Notes: generated by a model from the sequence alone, not told the origin. Positions 3,918-56,713 are shown, counted from the first letter of the stretch. The stretch is 64,000 nucleotides of DNA from Mytilus trossulus (GCF_036588685.1 NC_086380.1:24428001-24492000), one strand, 5' to 3'. A program made the numbers and translations.

Positions 3918-4874
3918 ATGGCAGAATTTCAACAATTTCAACATATACTGGATAAATGTGTTCAACAAAACCACGATCCAGCAAGTGTGTACCAGAGTCG
4001 GCATACAGCCTTCACAAATGATATGATATCTGCCTTTCCTAACTCTCCAACCGCCCAGAAATACAAAATTGCATATGAAATGTTCGAGAAAGGAAAATCG
4101 ATCCTTCGTACATATACGAAAACTAAAGTTGATTTTGACGATGAATGCGATTTCCTGCAACCAGCTTTTCATAGCTATGCTTATGGAGAAATGTCTGATA
4201 CTGTCTGGTTTGGTGAATTCAGACCTCCCAAAAATGCATCTGACCTTGTAAATCAATACCTTCAACATAGACCGAATGATGTATTATCGGAATACTGTAA
4301 GACCATTTTTGCCTATCGTTCGGAAATTGATGAACAAAATGGAAGCCAATTGTCAAAATTTCAACATTTACACATAGCTATTCGTACAACGGAAGTGTTC
4401 GCTATGAAAGTAAGGGATGCCACTCCCACATCAGATATTAAACATAAAATTCTTTCTAAATTGTACAATACGTTAGGTTCGTTTTATACAATAACAGACC
4501 AGGGGTTTCGTGCAATTGATGCTTTTCAGAATGCATATGATATTGACAATAACGATTACGATTCTCTCCTTGGCATTGCGTGGTGGCAAAGGGAGGAGAA
4601 TTCAGAAAAAGCCATCAATTTGTTCCATAAGTATTTAGACGTCGCACCAGAATGTGATAAGAAGTATTATGATGCATTTTATTCACTAGCAGTTATATAT
4701 CTCATGTCTTATAAGGACATACCAAAATTCCAAGAATATTATAACAAGGCACTAAACGCCGAAAAAAAGCAGTTGCCGTTTTATCCACTTCGCGATACAC
4801 CTATGAGACAATGTGCTAAGATGATGATGGCAGTTTGTAAAAATATTTTTATGAGAAAACAGTTACATAATTAA
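3918..4874 (+). CDS. TPR-like helical repeat protein, 318 aa, single coding exon
   Basis: Intact ORF; TPR-like helices (LYNTLGSFY..AIDAFQNAYDID, AINLFHKYLDVAP, AFYSLAVIY..YYNKALNAE); splice acceptor-like tttatttccag just upstream, conserved in the paralogue at ~29970. Confidence 0.85.
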   Translation: MAEFQQFQHILDKCVQQNHDPASVYQSRHTAFTNDMISAFPNSPTAQKYKIAYEMFEKGKSILRTYTKTKVDFDDECDFLQPAFHSYAYGEMSDTVWFGEFRPPKNASDLVNQYLQHRPNDVLSEYCKTIFAYRSEIDEQNGSQLSKFQHLHIAIRTTEVFAMKVRDATPTSDIKHKILSKLYNTLGSFYTITDQGFRAIDAFQNAYDIDNNDYDSLLGIAWWQREENSEKAINLFHKYLDVAPECDKKYYDAFYSLAVIYLMSYKDIPKFQEYYNKALNAEKKQLPFYPLRDTPMRQCAKMMMAVCKNIFMRKQLHN

Positions 4875-6252: not shown

Positions 6253-7139
6253 TTAATGATATAGTTTACCATATTGAAGTTGTTTGACGTCATTGGGCTC
6301 CAAGACAGTTAAAAACTTTCGATCAAATCTTGTTAAAGAAATTTGTAAATTTATGAACATGAAAAAAACATTTACAACAGCATACCATCCTGAGACTGAT
6401 GGTTTAGTGGAACGTTTTAACGGAACATTAACTGCTATGTTATCCATGTATGTTGGTGGATACCAGCGTGATTGGGAATCCTTTATTCCCTTTGTTTTGT
6501 TCGCTTACAGAACTTCGTTACACGAAAGTATACAAGAGACTCCGTTTTTCATAATGCATGGCCGTGATCCGATACTACCAGTAGAAGCAGTGATGTGTCC
6601 GCTTACTATAACGTATACCTCGAGTGACGATTACAAATCAGAAATGGTAACTAGACTGCAAGAGGCATTTACACTAGCCAAAGACAATTTACAGGCAGCG
6701 CAGCAGAAGCAAAAAGAACAATATGACTGGAAGTCTGGTGTGATTAACTATGCTATTGGTGAAAAGATATGGGTTTTTAATCCAAGTACAAAACCAGGAC
6801 TATCAACAAAACTGTTAAATAATTGGCATGGACCATATATAATTATTGATAAACTTTCAGATATGAACTATAAGATTCAAATGTGTGATTAGAAAAAATC
6901 TGAACAAACGGTACATGTTAATCGTATCTAATAATTTGTTGATCCTGATGAGAGACCCATTACAGATGAAGGAGATATTGGTTCGAACATTGATTCAATT
7001 GAAAATAATTGGCAATGCAATTGTGAAAATTGTAGATACAATGCTATCACTAAATGAGTCTAAGAGATTAGAAAAACATTATTTTGTACAGTATGAGAAT
7101 GGTGAAACCAAGTGGGTAAAAGAGAATGATATAATTTAA
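6253..7139 (+). pseudogene. Ty3/Gypsy integrase C-terminal fragment (core E motif, GPY/F module, chromodomain-like tail)
   Basis: TTAYHPETDGLVERFNGTL, FAYRTSLHESIQETPFF, WHGPYII; then stops and frameshift; tail HYFVQYENGETKWVKENDI. Confidence 0.9.
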
Positions 7140-10692: not shown

Positions 10693-11399
10693 CATACGAG
10701 TCTAAATTGAAAACTACCTTCAAAACTATGATTGCGTTGGATAAAATATATATATTTACTTACAGAAGTAGTTTTTTGTCACAGAATGCAAGGAAGCAGA
10801 TTAAGTTTGTATGGGCAAATAAAAGGAGACAAACCAATTAAACTTGAACCAATTATTGTAGAAATTGCTAATGCAAAACAATCTCAAGGTGAGCCTATCA
10901 ATACATCTCGTGATTTGTTAAAACATTCTCTGTATGAGGGTCTGGATGATGAGACCTTAAGCTTTATATACTAAATTATATCGGAGCACTCAATTAGCCC
11001 CTTAATTTTTTTTATATCAAAGAACCCAATAATTTTCTGTTGTTTGTGCTAAAGAACCCCATTATTCTTTATTCATTATTTTTTGGTTAAATTTTTCTGT
11101 ACATTTGGTCGATTATTGTCAACTCTGTGAAGTCCCTTCAGACTCTACTGTTAACAAACAGAATAGTCACTTACCGTTTAATTGATTTATTTCTTAGAGT
11201 TTAAACGTTCGTTCTTGTATTTTAGAATTGAATGCTTCTTTTTGTAAATTCTTTTGGGTGTGTAACGTTTACCGAAGTACATTTTGTATGAAGCACGGAA
11301 GCGCTCTATTCTAAAAATGTGCGCACAGTCAACGCTTTTACAACCCTTTGAAATTACAAAAAGAAGCATAAAGTGCAGTTTATCAATAATTTGTATGCT

Positions 11400-11617
11400 A
11401 CATTTATGGGCATTATGTTTTCTGGTCTGTGCGTCTGTTCGTCCGTTAATTGGTGTTGTCGTCTTTTCAACTTGAAACTTAGAACACATGTTTCCTATGA
11501 TTCGATCTTTCAATTCTAATGACAAATTAGAGTTTTCACCCCAATTTCACGGTCCTCTGAACATAGCAAAATATAGTGCGATTTGGGCATCCGTGTACTA
11601 TGGACTCATTCTTGTTC
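11400..11617 (+). mobile_element. Helentron-associated (HINE)-like short repeat with GTCC-type microsatellite; relatives at ~35250-35395 (+) and ~40280-40485 (-)
   Basis: Shared atgggcattatgttttctggtctgtgcgtc.. start and ..gggcatccgtgt..cattcttgtt end. Confidence 0.55.
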
Positions 11618-12206
11618 TATATACAAGCAAACACTCTTACGCATAAATTGCAAATCTGTCTTAAATTTGCAGATTAAGGCAAAGGGTTAAAACGATGGTA
11701 AACTGTTTTTGTACATTCCAAGATGGCGGTATGCAATGAATCTACATTAATAGGCTTTGTTACTGAGCTATATTAACATGTAAGAATGTTGCAGAAGTGT
11801 GGTTGAATCAAACCTCGTTTTACTCTGATGATTCCTTTGCGTATGGCGTACAAACTTATAATGCTTGTATTTTTTAATGATTTATATTACACAATGGGAC
11901 TTGACATGCTTGATTATTAAAATGACCTTGAATAACCAACAGATATATTTGGATGTCTATCAAGTTTTATGTCATACAATTGAAAAACTTGTACAATTTT
12001 TATTTCGAAAATGTCAAATATATTATTTATAAATAAAGGCTAGTATGTCTCAAAAGATTGAAGAAATATTTTCTAGTAATTTAACAAAGACAACATTTTA
12101 AAGTATCCACTTCACCAGGAGCTGGATCGTAAAACATTCAGAATTTTCCCTAAGACTCTTATGTTTATAAATCGACGTCAAATGGAAACTGCTCTGCTCT
12201 ATTGTA

Positions 12207-12629
12207 GTGGTGACATCTGATTTAGAGGACACCAAGAAAAGATAGTTGGTTGTTGGTATATGTCTGCATAGCGTTGTTACACCAGTATTGAGACACTATG
12301 TTTCAAATTCAATGAATCAGGTGTTTAATACACTGAAGCGATCTCACAAGATAGATACACAATGCTATCCAAATCATCTAAGGTGCTACCCAAAGACAGC
12401 CAATCTCAATTATGAAGCTATCAACAACAACAGAATTGTTCGTTCTGGAAAGAACAAAGATTATCAGAACTATGATTATAAAATTCAGAATTCTGTGGAA
12501 TTTTCGAAGCTGTTCCTGAACACCAACATGGCTAAATACACAGGTTTTGATGATACGTGTGATTCGTCCGCTCTATTAAACATCATCATGTGTAGTGATA
12601 CATCTGTTGTAGGTCGACTTGCTGATCAA
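12207..12629 (+). CDS. STAND gene exon 1: N-terminal HEPN-like domain; in-frame TAG at 12243-12245; GTG at the presumptive start
   Basis: VVTSDLEDTKKR*LVVGICLHS..CDSSALLNII..LADQ, ending at phase-0 donor CAA|GTAAGT. The 5' boundary is uncertain (ttgtag at 12202-12207 could be an acceptor). Confidence 0.75.
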
Positions 12630-13523
12630 GTAAGTGTTTATAATTTTTAAGTAAAGTATGCCCAGTTAATGTCAACATTATGAATTTGCATATACATTTT
12701 CCACTTGAATAAGAAACTCAAGTATACAAAACATTTCTTATTCCCATCTTGAACAATGCTTCCATCGTCGTCTTCGAAAACCATTGTCATTGATATGTTT
12801 GAAGAGCGTAATCTACCTTTTTTTAGGAATTGTACGTCATCATCGTTAAATGTAAAAAGTCATCTCAAGTCAATAATAAAGAATGATAATTCATCAGTTC
12901 TACGAGGTCATTATCTATTTTATATGTAGCATAAGTGACTATAAGTATTTATTTTGCGAGTGTTTGTTATGTGTGCTTAAGCATGTGGTCACTTATGGGT
13001 TGAACCAATCTAATCTGATTATCGTAAACCACAATTATGACTGCATACACTGTAACGGTAGCTGGTGATAGTAAATGTTTAAGTCATGAATCCTCCACTT
13101 CGACCCCTTGGGTATTAACTCATCCTATTAATAATGTGTATCTTTTTTTTTTACCAAAAGAGGTGTACCGAACGAGCATTTAATAAGTGCTAGTCTTTTC
13201 ATTACAGTCTTTATATTTCTATACATATAAAATATATATATAATGGAGAATGATTGCATGTTGAATAAGTACAAAATGTTGCCTAACAACTAGTAAACTT
13301 TCAAAGAATAGTTATGCGAGTTTGAACTCATCGTATATGAGTCATCGAATTTAACGTTCACAATAAGACTAAACGTTGCTACGTATATTGCAAACAAAGA
13401 TCAACGTCAGCCGAAAATAAGCATGCATTTCAAATAAAAGACCCTTAACAATTTAAAGTACTTTTAAGATCCATACATGATTTGAAGTAGTATTTATATC
13501 CACCTATACTTACTCTTTAACAG

Positions 13524-13686
13524 CTACGAAATGATGTAAGAAATCAATGGGCACATTGCAATTTTTCCGAATGGGATGAAATGAAATACTTAGGATCAAT
13601 TCAGCTGATGCAACAACTTATCAGATATCTACACATGCCTACTGAAGTAACAGTGCTAGCAGATTTATCTCACTGGGAAGTTAATG
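13524..13686 (+). CDS. STAND gene exon 2: HEPN R-x4-H motif (RNQWAH); not in the ORF track
   Basis: Acceptor ctctttaacag; LRNDVRNQWAHCNFSEWDEMKYLGSIQLMQQLIRYLHMPTEVTVLADLSHWEVNG; 163 nt, phase 0 in, phase 1 out (G|GTACAG). Confidence 0.85.
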
Positions 13687-14500
13687 GTACAGTTTATATA
13701 ATTACAAGCTTATATCATACAACATAATTACAAGTGATAATATTGTCAATGATACAACTCTCTATCAGAAACCGAGTAAGCAATTACAGGTCAATATCTT
13801 GGGCTTTAAATTGATACAATATAATTTCTTCGTTTTCAAAACTTTGTCATAACCAAGGTTTCTTAATTGTATGACACATATATAAGCATTAGAATGAGAA
13901 AAAGGGGGAGGCGGACGATTCTTTTATGAATTATTAATTTATAACACGCAAAAATAAAATCCAAATGGTAAATAATCAACGTCTGTTCGCCATGCACCAA
14001 TTAAAATACATCAAATGTCCATTTTAATATTTTTCAGATAATCTAATGGCCAACTATTTTAACATCTGAACAAGAAAGAGACGTTAACAGATACCGAGAA
14101 TGAAAATATTTAGATAAACAAACTCGAATCCTGAACCAGATTATTTAACAAGAATTTTGTATTTACGTAATCATTTCTTGGTTTTGCACTACACATTTGT
14201 ACAAATTATATCCGTTTTATCATACCACAACCTAATCAGAGCATTCAGGCATTAATATACCATGTAAGTAATGTTCGTTTTAAAAATGAGTACTCGAAAG
14301 TTAATTCCCAATCCTGCAGAATCGTTAACGTCAATATCTAGTTTAAGTATAGGTTGGATGAAGTAATCACTGTATAAGATGGTAAACAAATTCAATTACA
14401 AAAGTAACAAATGTCTTGAAAGTATCATGGCATAATACCGAACTTCGAGGAAATAGTAAATGAAAATTCCATAAGAAATTGTCAGAATCAAAAGCTTAAA

Positions 14501-15215
14501 TAAAGGCAACAGTAGTATACCGCTGTTCAAAACTCATAAATCCATGGACAAAAAACAAAATCGGGGTAACAAACTAAAACCGAGGGAAACGCATTAAATA
14601 TATGAGGAGAACAAAGACACAACACTGAAATGTAACACACACAGAAACGGACCAAGCATCAGACAAAATCCCACGAAAATAACAAACATAACATCAAAAC
14701 CAAATACATGAATTTGGGATAGACAAATACCGTGACACGTCTTATCGCAATGTGAAATTACATTAAAAAATAAGAGAAAACAAACGACGCAACGTTAAAT
14801 TGTAACACACACAGAAACGAAAATAATACAACAATGGCCATCTTCCTGATTTTGTACAGGACATTTTTAAAGGGAAAAATGGTGGGTCGAACCTGGTTTG
14901 TGGCATGTCAAACCTCGCACTTTAATTGTCATGTTAAATATAACATTGAAATGACAATACAGTATTACAGAACTACAATACAAATAAATAGGAGAACATA
15001 TTAGACAAAGAAACATATGATTAATAGATAACTAAAAGCATCAGGTTTTAAATTCAATACGCAAAAAACGCGCCTTGTCCACACAAGACTCACCAGTGAC
15101 GCCCAGATATAAAAGATCGAAAGTGAAAAAAGTAAAAAAAGTTGTACAGCACTGAAGATCAAAAGTTGAAAAAAGGTTGTGTCAAATACCGCTATGTTTT
15201 TCTGCTTGGGATAAA
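14501..15215 (-). mobile_element. Composite non-autonomous element: retrozyme-like head with degenerate hammerhead plus ~550-bp tail (intron 2 of the STAND gene)
   Basis: Close to 21410-22060; reverse complement of 15059-15106 reads gcgtca-CTGGTGA-gtct-tgtgt-ggac-aagg-cgcg. Confidence 0.75.
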
Positions 15216-15605
15216 ACACATCAAACAAATGGACAACAACTGCCATACTCAAATATGTCATTTATACCTCCGTGTTTTGAAGATTTTACAGTTATAAAAG
15301 TTGATCATTTAACTTTTAACCAACTTGTCTAATGTGTCAGATATATTATTGTCACTTGTGTTAAAATATGTTAGGAGTGTGATATATATTTTATAAAAAT
15401 CATTGAGCATTATGTCCCCCTTTGATAAATTTAGGAACTTCCCCGGTCAGAGTAAAGTTTGGTTTCGATCGCTTATGAAATAGTAGCAAAGTTAAGAACT
15501 TTTTGATAATATATTCATTTAGGAACCAGAAGACTTGTAAAAAAAAAATATAAAGTGAACTCAGGTTTACATATTATTATAGGTATCTTATCCACTATAT
15601 ATATT

Positions 15606-15935
15606 TAAGAAAATATGGTATGAGTGCCAATGAGACAACTCTTCATGCAAGTCACAATTTTTAAAATTAAACCGTTATAGGTCAAAACTAGGTGTGAATA
15701 CGAAACCCTTGCTCACACCGAACAGGAGGTATAAAGAGAGTTCCAAAAAAGTAACTAGTGAAAAAACCATTCAAACGAGAAGACTAACGGTCTAATCTGT
15801 ATAAAAAAGGCGAAACGAGAAACACGTATGAACTACACAAACAAACGACAACTACGGAACATCAGATGCCTGATTTAGGATAGGTGTAAAAACATGCAGC
15901 GAGTTTAATCGTGTAAATAGGTATTAACCTTCACC
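15606..15935 (-). repeat. High-copy interspersed repeat (atgtggtatgagtgccaatgagacaact family)
   Basis: Reverse match to 25290-25610 and direct match to 46046-46370. Confidence 0.8.
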
Positions 15936-16099
15936 ATTAATAAGGTTAGAGTTAATAGAAATAGAAATTTTATGAAAATGCTATCCATCATGTGTTTTAG
16001 TTTCCAAAGCTAAAAAAGTTAAACATACGTTAGACAGAGGAAAGAGGGCGACAGGAATATATGTATATCATTCATTATCTGTCATACGTCTCTTTTTAG

Positions 16100-19000
16100 G
16101 TATCAACCTTTTCCAAGGAACAAGATTAGGTCTAGAAATAGTTGAAGAAGTCAATAAACACACTCAAAGTTTGGCCAAGTATGTACTCCAACTAAAATCT
16201 GAGACGACTTCCTATTCTGAAATGGTTCACAGTTCGTTAGTTCTGATATCTAATAATATTAGCAATGTCTGTAAATGTATTGACCAAACAAACAGAGATT
16301 TATCACGAATCACAAGCGAAGTAAGTTCGCTGAGGTTTCGAACTGATAACATCGAACAGATTGTAAATGAAAACGTCCAAGATATCAAAGATATAAGAAC
16401 TGATATAGAGAATATAAACAACTATAACTCGCATCAGAGACCCAAAGCAAAAGTTTTCTTTTATCCACCAGATAGAGTTATTGTTTTTGTTGGTAGGGAA
16501 GACAAATTGCTCTCATTAAAAGACAAGTTTGTACAGAATAAAGATGTGAACCACACAGAAGTAATATGCGGTTTGGGAGGATGTGGTAAAACTACTTTGT
16601 CCATAGAATTTGCATGGATGTTTCAGCAGTTCTATCCTGGTGGTGTCTTCTGGGTTTCTGCAGAATCAAATGACTCTCTAGAGGACACAATTACAACTCT
16701 TGCTATTGATGTAGGCACATTAGGACAGAACAGTAAAGAAACTTTCAAGAGAAGTATCAGTTGGTTAGGACAATTAACAAAGAGATGGTTGATTGTAATC
16801 GATAACGCAGATACAGCTATTATTTCTGGTCAAATGAAGGAATTACTTCTAGGAAAGTGGAAACGAGGCACAAAAGGGCATATTATAATAACATCAAGAC
16901 GAGAACCACTTGCTATAGAAGAGACTTTCCATGTCAGAACAATCGACTGCAATTATCTAGAAATATTCAACGACGTAGAAGGAGTTCAATTTTTGATGAA
17001 ACGAACTGGAATATGTGATGAAAAGTCCAATAGCAACATATCAAAATTAGTAAAAGAGCTTGGAGGTCTTCCTTTAGCTTTAGAACAAGCTGCTGCTCAC
17101 ATCAAAAGCATTAATTGTTCCTTCAAAGATTACCTATCCAGTTTTGAGAAAAAACGCCTCACATTATTATCGAAGACTACAAACCCTCCATTTGAAGCAA
17201 ATATAGATAGACTTGCAGTAATGACAACTTGGCAATTAAACATGGATTACATCAGATCTCAGTCAGAAGCAGAAGGGCTTGGGACGTCTGCTGTTATCAT
17301 TATGAAAGTAGCATCTTTCTTATTTGCAGACGACATGCCCGTTGAAATTTTCAATAGCGGGGAACCCACAATAAGTGTCGAAAACCTATATGAATCACTT
17401 ACAGACCCAATTGGAATAAAACACGCGGTTGAAATTTTAACTAGGTTTTCATTATTTCAAAGATATCGATCAGAAAGTTTATCAGTTCATAGATTAGTCC
17501 AAGAAGTAATAAGAGGCAACATTGAAAGAGACGAAAAAACATTCATTCTTCAATGTGCAATAAAAATGACTAATAAAGCACTAATGTCTACAACTACTCC
17601 CCACACAGCTATTCTAAAACCAAAAAATGAACCACAGGCTTCTAGAGGATTACTTAATATATGGAGTAAATTAGCTGCAAATGCAAATACATTAAAAAGT
17701 TATCTCAGTGTAGGCAAAGAGAGCCAGGAAAACAAAAATCTATATATTAGTTTGGAATCTGCAAGAGTAATGCAAGCATCAGCTATTTACAACAGTCTGT
17801 CTCAGAGACAAGATGTGGCCCTGGAGGATCAAAATCAGATGCTGAATATAATGGCGTCCTTAGATATGGATGAGCAAACTTATAATGAACTTACAAGTAT
17901 TAAAATACCACTTTTAGAGAGAGATCGTATTCGTGTCCAAAATAGCATTGCAACTGTATTACAAGATGAGGGTAATGAAAATATTAAAAGTTTTGCGGTA
18001 GTTCCTCTTACACCAGACAGATTGAGAGAAATAGGTAATAAAGCATTTCAGGAAAACCGATACGAGGACGCTCTACAATACTATACTGAAGCGTTGCGGG
18101 CATGTCCAAAGAAAGATTTCGACCATAGAATATTGACAAACAGAAGTTTAGCGTACCTGAAAGTTCATGAATACGCCTATGCTCTTGCCGATGCTAATGC
18201 TTCGATCGAAATAAATCCTCATTTGTGTAAACCGCATCTATGGAAATCATACGCCATTGCCGAGCTCAGGAATAAAGGCACATTGCAGTCGAAAATGGAA
18301 GGTTCGGGTATAGCAAGTGCTTCTATTGCAGCCTTTTTAAATAAGCTATGCTTACACGAATACAAAATGAAAGTTCATTATCCTATAATCATGTATGAAA
18401 TCATAGAATGTGAAAATCAGTACATCGATTTACCATCCAGGATTATGTCTATCGTAGATCGCCCTTTTACAACATACATGCTGAAAAAAGGACGATATAC
18501 CTTCTCACAACTTGTAAAAACAACAAAGAGTTGTCAAGTTATAGGGGTTGAAACCGGAGTAGAAATTGAAATGGAATTTGGGATTCAAATTTCAAGACCT
18601 TTAGACTATGAATTTGATTTCGAGCGAGAACGAGAAATAGCGGTTCATTTTGAAAACATATCGTTTTGTTCTAAAGGTAGTCAAGTAAAACATGTAAAAG
18701 TAAAAGAAGGTGGAATTGGAACTTTCTATAGATGCAATTTTTTGCACCAATATCTCAAAGAAGAAATAAAATTTGAAGAATGTATTGACACCTTTTATCA
18801 AAGGTTTTAAAGTATCATAACTATGGACGACAAAAAACATATCTCAAGCATCGTCTTATCACAAGGTGGTATGATTGTTTTAAACTTATGTGATATATAC
18901 TGTTATGGTGGTTGTGGCATTTTTGCACATGGTGAAACTTCTTTCCTGGATATTTCGAACTGCAATGTTCACAACTCAGTGATAGGAATAGTCGTTGGTG

Positions 19001-20142
19001 ATGGAGGAACAATGACAGCCGTAGACAATCGAATATGCAGTCACATATTGCATGGCGTAGCAATTGGTCCCAATGGTGCAGCACTTTTAAAAGGTAATAC
19101 TATTTCACAAAATAAAGCTGAGGGTATATGGTGTGGTGGAAAAAATAAATATAAAGAAATAAGTACTGCAAAAACTAAGGTCACTGCGCTTGACAATTTT
19201 ATATTTCAGAATGGTTTATCTGGAATTTGCCTAGACGGAGGATACTTTTTGTTAAAGAACAATATTATATCCGATAATTGGGCATGGGGAATTCTTATAA
19301 AAGAAAGATCCTCTGTTTTTGCTGAGAGCAATGACATTTCTTCTAACAAGTGTGGCGGCATAAGAGTCGGTATTAATTATTCTGCTTCAGTTATTATTGA
19401 TGGAAATACAATCAAAAACCACAGTGGACCAGCTATATTTGCTATCAATGATGAAATAAGCTATAATGCAAAGGCTACAGATTTAGATGAGACTGAAGTC
19501 TATTCAACCGCTCCAATCATGACAGACAGAAATCTTAGCTTATGTAATGATAAACTGATTCAATCTCCCAGAGATACAATGAAGTCATCAAAAACATGTT
19601 GTGGTTGCCAAAAAATGTCAGCAAGCTTGAAAGCATGTACCAATTGTAAAATTGCTCAATATTGTTCGAAAGGATGTCAGAGAAATCACTGGATCCTTCA
19701 TAAACATATGTGCCCGCTCTTATCAGAGAAATACACAATTCAAATTCGAATAACAGATACATTATCTTGTGCACCTTATATCACTAAAAACTATAAATCA
19801 GAATATGTAATTTCCACTCGACATTTTCATCCCTCACTTAAAGGAATATGCGAGGGGCTTCCCCCTGATGTTAAATCAACGAAGAGGTTCATCGTAAAAG
19901 TTCAATCTGACCACGATTATTTGCCGTACAATCCCAAAAAATATTTGACACTTTATGATCAAAGCGTAACTTTGGATATACAGCTGATAAATCCTGAACT
20001 TTATCATTTGTGCAGCGAATGTGGAAAACTCAGCGGTGATAAAATTACGTCTAAAAAGATTTTTTGCTGGGCCTCATATAAAAATGGGGGAGATATCCTC
20101 TGTATTCATACTGACGAATTTCCATCATTTCAAACATGGTGA
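16100..20142 (+). CDS. STAND gene exon 3: coiled coil, NB-ARC, TPR, beta-helix, MYND finger, C-terminal domain; one in-frame TAA at 18808-18810
   Basis: Acceptor tctttttag with matching phase; Walker A GLGGCGKTT (16570-16596), Walker B WLIVIDNAD, IIITSR, GGLPLALEQA, VHRLVQ; TPR LREIGNKAFQENRYEDALQYYTEAL; GN-x-I-x-x-N repeats; MYND C-x2-C..CTNC..YCSKGCQRNHW..HKHMC (19597-19713). ORFs 16171 and 18823 share a frame. Confidence 0.9.
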
Positions 20143-21340: not shown

Positions 21341-21409
21341 GGGCGAAAATTATTTTTTTTGGCTTGTACGACAAAATTTCATTATATCGAGAACGATGCA
21401 TGAATAAAT

Positions 21410-22060
21410 AAAAGCAACAGTAGTATACCGCTGTTCAAAACTCATAAATCGATGGACAAAAACAAAATCGGGGTAACAAACTAAAACCGAGGGAAACGCA
21501 TTAAATATAAGAGGAGAACATTGACATAACACTAAAATGTAACACACACAGAAACGGACCGAGCATCAGACAAAATCCAACGAGATTAACAAATATAACA
21601 TAAGAACCAAAAACATGAATTTGGGAAAGACAAGTACCGTGACACGTCTTATCGCAATGTGAATTTACACTCACAAATAAGAGGAAACAAACAACGTTAA
21701 AATGTAACACAATCAAAAACGAACTATAATATAACAATGGCCATATAGACTTGGTACAGGACATTTTTAAAAGAAAAATGGTGGGTTGAACCTGGTTTTG
21801 TGGCATGCCAAACCTCGCACGTTTATGGCCATGAGAAATATAACATCAAAATGACAACACAACACCACGGGAACACAGCCAACAAAAGGCAACAAGCTTA
21901 TATTTTAATACGTGAGAAGTGCATTTTGTCCACACAAGACCTACTAGTGACGCCCAGATACAAAAGTTTGAAAGCCGAAACAAATACAAAGTTGAACAGC
22001 ATCGAAGACCAAAAGATCAAAAAAATTGTGCCAAAAACGGCAAGGATGTTCTGATACCAG
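21410..22060 (-). mobile_element. Second copy of the composite hammerhead-headed element
   Basis: Same aaa(g)gcaacagtagtataccgctgttcaaaactcataaatc terminus as 14501; degenerate hammerhead at ~21912-21956. Confidence 0.75.
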
Positions 22061-55132: not shown

Positions 55133-56713
55133 AGTGTCAGAGCTGTTCATGAATGAAAAAAATATATTCTTCGCTCTGTAAATCAGGATATTGCTTGTAA
55201 ATCTGTCCTAGAAAATCTGAAAGAAGACGAGATGTTAGTTGAACGTGATTGGGCCATGAAGTTTATTCCAATGCAATACAGAGAATCTCAATCTAATTGG
55301 TTCGGTAAACGGGGACTCAATTGGCATGTTACTGTTGCAACTTTCAAATACAGACAGGCCTTGACAATGCATACTGTTATTCACATCTTTGACAGTGCAC
55401 CCCAAGATGCTGAGACATCAAATGCTGTTCTTGGGAACAGTTTAGAGATTTTTCATCAAATTAATCCTTGCCTGACAAATGCCTCTCGATCTGATAATGC
55501 TGGATGTTTTCATGGAGCAGCATCTGTATGTGCCATGCCATTTCTTTCATCCATTGTTCAATGTAAAAGAATGGATTTTGCAGACCCTCAAGGTGGAAAG
55601 TCCATCTGTGACAGAAAAGCTGCCCATGTCAAATCATACATCAGACGATACGTCAATGAGGGCAATGATGTATGTACAGCAATGGATTTTAAAAATGCAT
55701 TAATGAAATCAAACATAAAGAAAGTGTCTGTGGTTGTTGCACTTCAACCTCCTAAATCTGACAGCAAGAAGAAAGAACCTACTGTTTTTAAACTGCCAAA
55801 GATCACAACTGTAAATAACTTTTCGTTCAAAAATGGTGGAGTGCAAGTTTGGAGGCAGTATGGAATAGGACAAGGCTGTCATATTCCTGCTGTTGATATG
55901 GCAACTACTAGGGATCTACCAGAACTAACCATTATTGAAACTTATCTAAATCAACAGACAGAAACAGATGTCAGACAGACAGAAACAGAAGTCGGACAGA
56001 CAGAAACAGAAGTTAGACAAGCAGGAATCATAGAAGCTGAAGTCCCTCTTCAGGAACCTGTAACACAAGAAAATGAAATTGAAGTTGAATCTTTAGTCAA
56101 TGACAACACTGTAACTACAGGTGACAAACCAAATGATGATGTTGATTCTGTCACAGAAGAAGAAATGTCTAATTTGTTTTCTTGTAATGAATGTACAAAA
56201 ACATTTAGCAAATATGGTAATCTGTTGCGTCATCTGGATATTGGAAAGCATAGTGTAAAAAAGGAAAATAAGAAACTTTCTGACAAATCAAAGATTGAAT
56301 ATTCCAGGCATATGGAAAAGGTCAATACTGTAACTGTTAATTCAAATAACTTTTCTTCTGGTAATTCTAACAGTGATCTTACACAGGGATGGGCATTAAA
56401 GATAAGGAGAACAGTCAAAAGGTTTACCCAGGACCAAAAGAAGTATCTTCAAGAAAAGTTCGACAGAGGTGAAAAAACTGGACAGAAGTTTGATCCGGAT
56501 GAAGTATCCCAGGATATGAGAATGGTAAGAACAACAAGTGGACGAAAACGTTTTTCCCAAGAAGAGTTCCTATCGACAACACAGATAGCTAGTTACTTTA
56601 GTCGTCTTGTATTAAATAAACGCAAATTATACAATCCTTTGTATACAGCAGATGATGAACAAGCAGAAACAGCTGAAGCAGAATTTATAGAACTGAATTT
56701 AGTAGCAGCTTAA
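55133..56713 (+). pseudogene. Sola3-like DDD transposase exon with C2H2 finger and C-terminal helical domain; in-frame TGA at 55154-55156
   Basis: RDWAMKFIP..RESQSNWFGKRG, RSDNAGCFHG, DPQGGKSICDR carry three acidic residues; FSCNECTKTFSKYGNLLRHLDIGKH; frame extends upstream as VHE*KKYILRSVNQD after a tttttttag acceptor. Confidence 0.7.

Follow-up and report, generated by a model that had tools for sequence, protein, structure and literature searches.

HEPN domains fused to STAND nucleoside triphosphatases (NTPases) have been described in several animal groups. Anantharaman et al. 2013 (PMC3710099) predicted that HEPN domains of the CXorf38 type and of the DZIP3 type are fused to NACHT, Death, and TPR domains in animals, with expansions in oyster, and that CXorf38-family fusions to NACHT and Death domains exist in amphioxus and cnidarians. 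HEPN-NACHT genes number over 50 in the pearl oyster according to Takeuchi et al. 2022, and Noel et al. 2023 reported HEPN heads on coral NLRs. The DZIP3/hRUL138-like HEPN-NACHT genes are lineage-expanded, clustered, and variable, and they have been read as NLR-like immune receptors (PMC9646362, PMC10236652). In bivalve genomes, STAND proteins with a HEPN head make up some of the largest expanded gene sets. Here, we analyzed a stretch of 64,000 nucleotides (nt) from Mytilus trossulus (GCF_036588685.1, NC_086380.1:24428001-24492000), referred to as the window, which contains a single plus-strand gene of this kind at positions 10786-20142. An earlier note on this DNA had proposed a HEPN-STAND receptor in a mollusc. 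The fusion is real, but such fusions in animals, bivalves included, had already been published as predictions in the studies cited above.

We consider it probable that an NLR-like STAND receptor is encoded here by a mussel gene with multiple copies, and that this copy was inactivated recently. From the N- to the C-terminus, the protein would consist of a HEPN domain of the CXorf38/Swt1 type without zinc ribbon, a coiled coil, an NB-ARC module with DUF7779, a Hop-like TPR module, a linker, a beta-helix, a MYND finger, and a conserved C-terminal domain, and the intact members of the family would act as gated RNases.

Each of the known systems shares only a part of this layout. With the CXorf38/DUF4559 family (PF15112) of the Swt1-like clade, the gene shares an all-helical domain with two conserved motifs in the same order, but CXorf38 contains a cysteine-rich zinc-ribbon insert that is absent here, and the STAND partner is NACHT there and NB-ARC here. 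[quoted passage not shown] However, their HEPN domain belongs to another family, their NTPase is NACHT, and their tail consists of LRR or WD40 repeats, whereas NB-ARC, beta-helix, MYND, and the C-terminal domain are found here. Bacterial Avs and HEPN-STAND-TPR proteins and the fungal NB-ARC-TPR NLRs follow the same logic, in which a nuclease-type effector at the N-terminus and a sensor at the C-terminus are joined by a STAND switch. Their sensor is a solenoid, in contrast to the single three-repeat TPR module of the mussel gene, and they have no counterpart of its tail domains. Apaf-1 and CED-4, the apoptosome proteins, belong to the same NTPase family, but the gene encodes neither CARD nor WD40 and the similarity is very weak. 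A literature search found no paper on the layout of NB-ARC, TPR, beta-helix, and MYND. The layout itself is present in databases as uncharacterized proteins, and this locus is a broken example of it. The earlier note was aware of no characterized protein with the full architecture; none has been characterized, but the databases already contain annotated examples.

Gene structure and domain order

The gene has four coding exons, which add up to 4731 nt or 1577 codons, the terminal stop counted. GT and AG are present at every exon border, and the phases are compatible. The structure was derived with the aid of two natural full-length homologues, P0001 of M. edulis (1436 amino acids) and P0002 of M. 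coruscus (1564 amino acids), which were used in place of a spliced protein; the exons were searched one by one. In tblastn, both proteins are colinear with the gene over all junctions, in four blocks. Exon 0 (10786-10888) starts with an ATG at 10786, was located by tblastn with residues 1-34 of P0001 and P0002, and contains 34 codons plus 1 nt (phase 1), followed by a donor GT at 10889. Exon 1 (12208-12629, with AG at 12206-12207 and GT at 12630) encodes the N-terminal two thirds of the HEPN-like domain and is 67-85% identical to residues 35-176 of P0002 and P0001. The C-terminal third is encoded by exon 2 (13524-13686), which is 63% identical to residues 177-230 of P0002 and contains the RNQWAH motif at 13539-13556. 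Exon 3 (16100-20142; 4043 nt) follows an acceptor AG at 16098-16099, encodes everything from the coiled coil through the C-terminal domain, and ends with the stop codon at 20140-20142. It matches residues 231-1564 of P0002 (1334 residues) in one tblastn high-scoring segment pair, without a frameshift. The borders and the colinear Mytilus proteins bear out the three exons and splice phases given in the earlier note, and RNQWAH lies in exon 2 as it had stated. Its exon 1 start of 12207 had to be corrected by one nucleotide because the acceptor AG occupies 12206-12207, and it had overlooked the 5' coding exon with the ATG.

Exon 3 opens with a coiled-coil-like linker (16100-16461) with a heptad-like sequence and only weak matches to coiled-coil families such as MCPsignal and Tup_N. 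The NB-ARC STAND NTPase follows at 16498-17163 (Pfam NB-ARC, E = 1.2e-8, 35 bits versus a cut-off of 23.5), with the P-loop GLGGCGKT at 16570-16593, the Walker B motif LIVIDNAD at 16786-16812, a TSR motif at 16882-16902, and the GLPLA motif, in the form GGLPLALEQAA, at 17062-17094. DUF7779 (17269-17535; E = 1.1e-8, 35.7 bits versus a cut-off of 27) represents the helical/winged-helix part of the STAND module and contains an MHD-like VHR (SVHR) within 17482-17508. Walker A, Walker B, a GLPL-type motif, an MHD-type histidine, and a Pfam score above the cut-off together assign the module to the STAND NB-ARC (AP-ATPase) family. Its nearest solved relative is Apaf-1, with a weak match confined to the P-loop region (E = 2e-5). 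NACHT reached only E = 0.095, and LRR, CARD, PYD, and Death domains were not found with Pfam, so that the protein does not qualify as a canonical animal NLR of the NACHT-LRR type. PADLOC defense-system profiles, including those for Avs, matched neither half of exon 3.

The three repeats of the TPR module (18022-18267; Pfam TPR_1/TPR_2) are of the type seen in the co-chaperone Hop/STIP1. Among solved structures, the module is best matched by STIP1/Hop (E = 1.9e-22), SPAG1, RPAP3, SGT1, TOM70, PP5, and CHIP. In TPR domains of this type, a carboxylate clamp binds an EEVD-type C-terminus. In the alignment with Hop TPR1, four of the five clamp positions (K8, N12, N43, K73, and R77) carry R, N, N, and K here and the fifth is W, which serves as a lead only. 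Judging from this sequence similarity, the module may dock the C-terminus of a chaperone. The TPR part of the sensor tail that had been envisaged for this protein is therefore a single three-repeat Hop/STIP1-like module, and not a long solenoid as in Avs or fungal NLRs. Farther downstream, a right-handed parallel beta-helix of the PbH1/CASH type is encoded at 18883-19452 (Pfam Beta_helix, E = 2.6e-18; NosD, E = 7.2e-9), followed by a MYND zinc finger at 19597-19713 (zf-MYND, E = 4.5e-7, 30.2 bits versus a cut-off of 22.7). The nearest solved structures of the latter are the MYND fingers of DEAF1, SMYD1, and ETO. The Pfam matches for NB-ARC, DUF7779, TPR, Beta_helix/NosD, and zf-MYND are all above or near their cut-offs.

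The last domain (19735-20139) comprises about 135 residues, ends with FQTW, and belongs to no Pfam family. Ninety-four family members that were fetched, cnidarian ones included, have this domain at their very C-terminal end, with 30-65% identity. The AlphaFold2 (AF2) model is beta-rich, with a predicted local distance difference test (pLDDT) value of 85.9. Fold comparison yielded no significant match (Foldseek E > 0.1; best VIA-align Z 4.0), which does not by itself prove a new fold, and an ESM Atlas search with the domain gave no usable match. With the P-loop, Walker B, GLPLA, and VHR motifs located, and TPR, beta-helix, MYND, and C-terminal domain recovered in this order from Pfam and the conserved tail, the domain order proposed for exon 3 stands.

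The N-terminal HEPN-like domain

A phmmer search with exon 1 against 1.84 billion representatives matched 258 clusters. RNxW[A/G]H follows about 20 residues past the end of exon 1 in all homologues that extend far enough. In an alignment of 30 short but diverse family members (A1), the R, N, and H of this motif and a downstream W are invariant. RNQWAH thus represents the conserved R-x4-6-H motif, with N after the R, that characterizes the HEPN superfamily. When the members of A1 were scanned one by one, HEPN_Swt1 matched 18 of the 30 (best E = 9.7e-7) and DUF4559, which is the CXorf38 family (PMC4554924), matched 10 (best E = 1.1e-6). Exon 2 of the window by itself gave a weak match to the last 30 positions of the HEPN_Swt1 profile (E = 0.011). 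A1 was also compared with an alignment of 12 true DUF4559 open reading frames (ORFs) of the same genome (A3): hhalign aligned 152 columns with a probability of 88% and E = 3e-6, and the D.SAL and RN..AH motifs were in register. Like the HEPN_Swt1 matches, this shows a significant similarity to a known HEPN family at the level of profiles. Cysteines found in every sequence of A3 are absent from A1, and the zinc ribbon of CXorf38 (CxxC...CxxC) is therefore missing. A genome-wide scan with PF15112 matched 17 other loci and not this gene, the exons of which remained under the Pfam cut-off. The corresponding scan with HEPN_Swt1 yielded 0 matches, as it also did in control genomes, and is hence uninformative.

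The AF2 model of the family member P0150, computed with A1, is all-helical (pLDDT 89.3, predicted TM-score 0.80). R182-H187 mark the transition from helix 168-186 to the following loop, which is the position described for the HEPN motif (PMC3710099). In a wide VIA-align search, the model matched the yeast Swt1 HEPN domain over 123 of 136 residues (Z 6.8), Csm6 (Z 6.1), and the archaeal HEPN protein AF_0298 (Z 6.0). The ESM Atlas neighbors of the domain are mollusc clusters with HEPN_DZIP3 or DUF4559, plus a bacterial cluster with a Swt1-like HEPN. Foldseek searches of the model against PDB and BFVD gave no significant match, and the A1 sequence profile found only chance coiled-coil matches in PDB. 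The structure searches are consistent with HEPN, but they are not decisive. Judged by its motifs and profile similarity, the N-terminal domain is a divergent relative of the CXorf38/Swt1 HEPN clade that lacks the zinc ribbon and retains an intact catalytic-type motif. The N-terminal HEPN domain of the earlier note is thus supported as a HEPN relative, and R and H are conserved among homologues, as its own check had required.

Several observations weigh against the reading of this domain as part of a gated RNase. Most of the HEPN_Swt1 and DUF4559 matches are below the curated cut-offs of Pfam. The fold matches, at Z 6-8.5, are in a range that any four-helix bundle reaches, and unrelated bundles scored equally well. 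A homodimer prediction for the domain gave no answer (score 0.02) and speaks neither for nor against dimerization. The HEPN domain of yeast Swt1 is thought to be inactive (PMC3710099).

The DZIP3/hRUL138-like HEPN family (PF18738) was also considered and rejected, as it matched neither the exons of the window nor the N-terminal domains of the homologues. Its only strong match was a separate downstream domain of P0265. In this protein, an N-terminal domain similar to Swt1/CXorf38 is followed by a DZIP3-like HEPN domain at residues 248-308 (E = 2.3e-14), such that two HEPN types stand in tandem. Also present in the genome are 17 or more CXorf38-like (DUF4559) ORFs of 300-360 amino acids, most of them free of introns, with zinc ribbon and RN..AH, several of them in tandem; examples are G000 C2:38513643-38514284 and C2:47022519-47023205.

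Two premature stop codons

Both in-frame stops that the earlier note had read through are present in this assembly. The first, TAG at 12243-12245 in exon 1, occupies the position of a conserved tryptophan codon: 10 of 11 paralogues of the same genome have TGG and the remaining one TGT, and P0001 and P0002 both have W. The second, TAA at 18808-18810 in exon 3, replaces the leucine codon TTA. Among the five nearest paralogues, TTA is present in four and GTA (Val) in one, and the residue is L in both P0001 and P0002. The reading frame on either side of 18808 is unaltered relative to the paralogues. By comparison with these sequences, both stops are derived single-base nonsense changes, and neither introns nor frameshifts. 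Alternative splicing that skips the stops was examined and rejected, because an acceptor at 12245/12246 is out of phase with exon 0, and because around 18808 the alignment to the paralogues proceeds codon by codon.

The remainder of the gene is well preserved. All HEPN and NB-ARC motifs are retained, and the ratio of nonsynonymous to synonymous substitution rates (dN/dS) is 0.28-0.29 against three paralogues over about 630 codons. Because there is also no frameshift, the inactivation appears to be recent. About 12 loci of the same genome carry the family C-terminal domain. Seven of these have an open exon 3 frame of more than 1300 amino acids, and five, including this locus, are interrupted. 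Given that both stops are unique to this copy and derived, and that broken exon 3 frames recur at 5 of the roughly 12 paralogous loci, this copy is, as far as can be read from the genome, most likely a recent pseudogene or null allele in a birth-and-death gene family. The receptor that the earlier note had placed at this locus is to be viewed accordingly: the copy itself carries two derived nonsense codons.

Against the inactivation, the stops, as read from the assembly sequence, could be assembly errors or belong to one allele of a polymorphism. The gene would then be functional, with the stops being consensus errors or marking a null allele that segregates beside an intact one, as presence/absence-variable immune genes of mussels would lead one to expect. 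The otherwise whole frame over 1577 codons, the retention of all catalytic motifs, the dN/dS of about 0.29, and the fact that each stop is a single substitution away from a conserved codon would fit a functional gene. However, two independent nonsense changes are unlikely as consensus errors in a chromosome-scale assembly of 541 contigs, and several paralogues are broken as well. Moreover, no database protein exceeds 85% identity, and that over part of the length, so that no annotated intact orthologue was seen. Overall, we regard a functional gene at this position as unlikely, and the recently inactivated copy remains the preferred reading. Being broken, the locus is of less weight by itself, but it illustrates the birth-and-death turnover of such genes.

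Family distribution, possible mechanism, and genomic neighbors

The family extends far beyond this locus. A core without HEPN, which consists of the coiled coil, NB-ARC, DUF7779, TPR, beta-helix, MYND, and C-terminal domain (about 1380 amino acids), is found in bivalves, horseshoe crabs, hemichordates, amphioxus, and sea anemones. The HEPN-headed form is annotated in Mytilus edulis, M. trossulus, M. galloprovincialis, M. coruscus, Mercenaria, Ruditapes, Mya, Tachypleus, and Limulus, and a related HEPN-headed form exists in Branchiostoma. The layout is therefore not specific for molluscs, but occurs in horseshoe crabs and amphioxus too, with the HEPN-less core in cnidarians and hemichordates. 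One member of 1622 amino acids, P0281, is encoded on a public contig of 5070 nt; this contig leaves no space for introns and is thus transcript-like. The tail has been conserved from cnidarians to chordates.

The same N-terminal domain also heads nSTAND3-ankyrin proteins, NACHT proteins with beta-helix and MYND, Roc-COR proteins, and TPR-only proteins. In the same genome, the exon 1 domain is matched at 56 or more paralogous loci, and neighboring ones are located about 11 kb upstream and about 24 kb downstream of the window. Because it is combined with nSTAND3-ankyrin, NACHT, and Roc-COR classes, an effector-like role can be proposed for the domain. A module that is shuffled among STAND classes, expanded, and clustered shows a genomic pattern that suggests the effector domain of a defense receptor.

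Apaf-1, the NLRs of plants and fungi, and the bacterial HEPN-STAND proteins provide an analogy from which a mechanism can be outlined for the intact members. The NB-ARC switch would be held off by the C-terminal modules until these bind a trigger or a partner. Nucleotide-dependent oligomerization would then pair the N-terminal HEPN domains and thereby build a composite R-x4-H site, which is typical of HEPN RNases, a group marked by metal-independent endoribonuclease activity of the dimer. RNA cleavage would follow and would result in an abortive or stress-type defense. In the copy of the window, the change of TGG to TAG in exon 1 and of TTA to TAA in exon 3 would block synthesis of the full-length protein. 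The intact members could form an ancient class of intracellular receptors, extending from protostomes to amphioxus, in which a CXorf38-type HEPN RNase without zinc ribbon is switched on by NB-ARC oligomerization and the trigger is read by the beta-helix together with the C-terminal domain, which has a confident model but no match among solved folds. We advance this wider view tentatively and with considerable doubt. If true, it would represent an animal counterpart of bacterial HEPN-STAND defense.

The nature of several domains could also be taken to indicate a different function, in which the HEPN-like domain would not be a nuclease but an RNA-binding or protein-interaction module, as has been proposed for the HEPN domains of Swt1 and sacsin. 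The family would then participate in chaperone- or transcription-linked signaling via TPR and MYND, and not in immunity. This would agree with the TPR module being nearest to the TPR domains of Hsp70/Hsp90 co-chaperones, with the MYND finger being nearest to those of transcriptional co-repressors, with the maintenance of the HEPN-less core from cnidarians to chordates and the high conservation of the C-terminal domain, and with the lack of a match to the defense-system profiles. However, none of the 30 diverse members deviates at the R, N, or H of the catalytic motif, which argues for catalysis. In addition, shuffling among STAND classes, presence at 56 or more loci, and clustering with broken copies are typical of defense genes. 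A non-nuclease role outside immunity thus appears improbable to us, and a gated RNase remains our favored interpretation of the intact members. These proteins join a CXorf38-type HEPN domain to an NB-ARC switch, and their human relative CXorf38 is likewise without known function. The intact paralogues form a defined set with which it can be asked whether animals use oligomerization-gated RNases as bacteria do.

On the contig of the window, a cluster of genes with the same architecture was observed at G000:C8:24410432-24417292 (minus strand), C8:24515807-24522633 (minus), and C8:24681742-24690040 (plus). The first of these, upstream of the window, has an interrupted frame. The second, 24 kb downstream, has an intact exon 3 frame of 1361 amino acids and shares 90-97% identity with P0001 of M. 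edulis. Two copies are also present on another contig, at G000:C17:1732199-1740461 (plus) and C17:1812774-1819734 (minus); their order, orientation, and spacing match those of the gene of the window and its downstream neighbor. The copy corresponding to the downstream neighbor is near-identical in the exon 1 stretch that was read, and the copy in the place of the window gene is about 63-70% identical. This arrangement may reflect a haplotype that has diverged or, alternatively, segmental duplication and gene replacement.

When the window was compared with all fetched proteins by blastx, no other fragment of the family appeared outside 10786-20142. Three plus-strand ORFs showed no relation to the STAND family by blastx: 3918-4874 (318 amino acids) and 30535-30957 (140 amino acids), both with weak TPR matches, and 55232-56713 (493 amino acids), with one C2H2 zinc finger. 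An ORF of 202 amino acids at 6284-6892 (plus) matches the C-terminal domain of a retroviral-type p58 integrase at its end (E = 1.1e-5) and is likely to be what remains of a retrotransposon. Intron 2 of the gene contains a dispersed, non-protein repeat of about 600 nt at 14497-15123. A second copy in the same orientation is located at 21405-21974, about 1.3 kb downstream of the stop codon of the gene; the two belong to direct repeat families D1-D4, with 76-94% identity, and look like a SINE- or MITE-like element.

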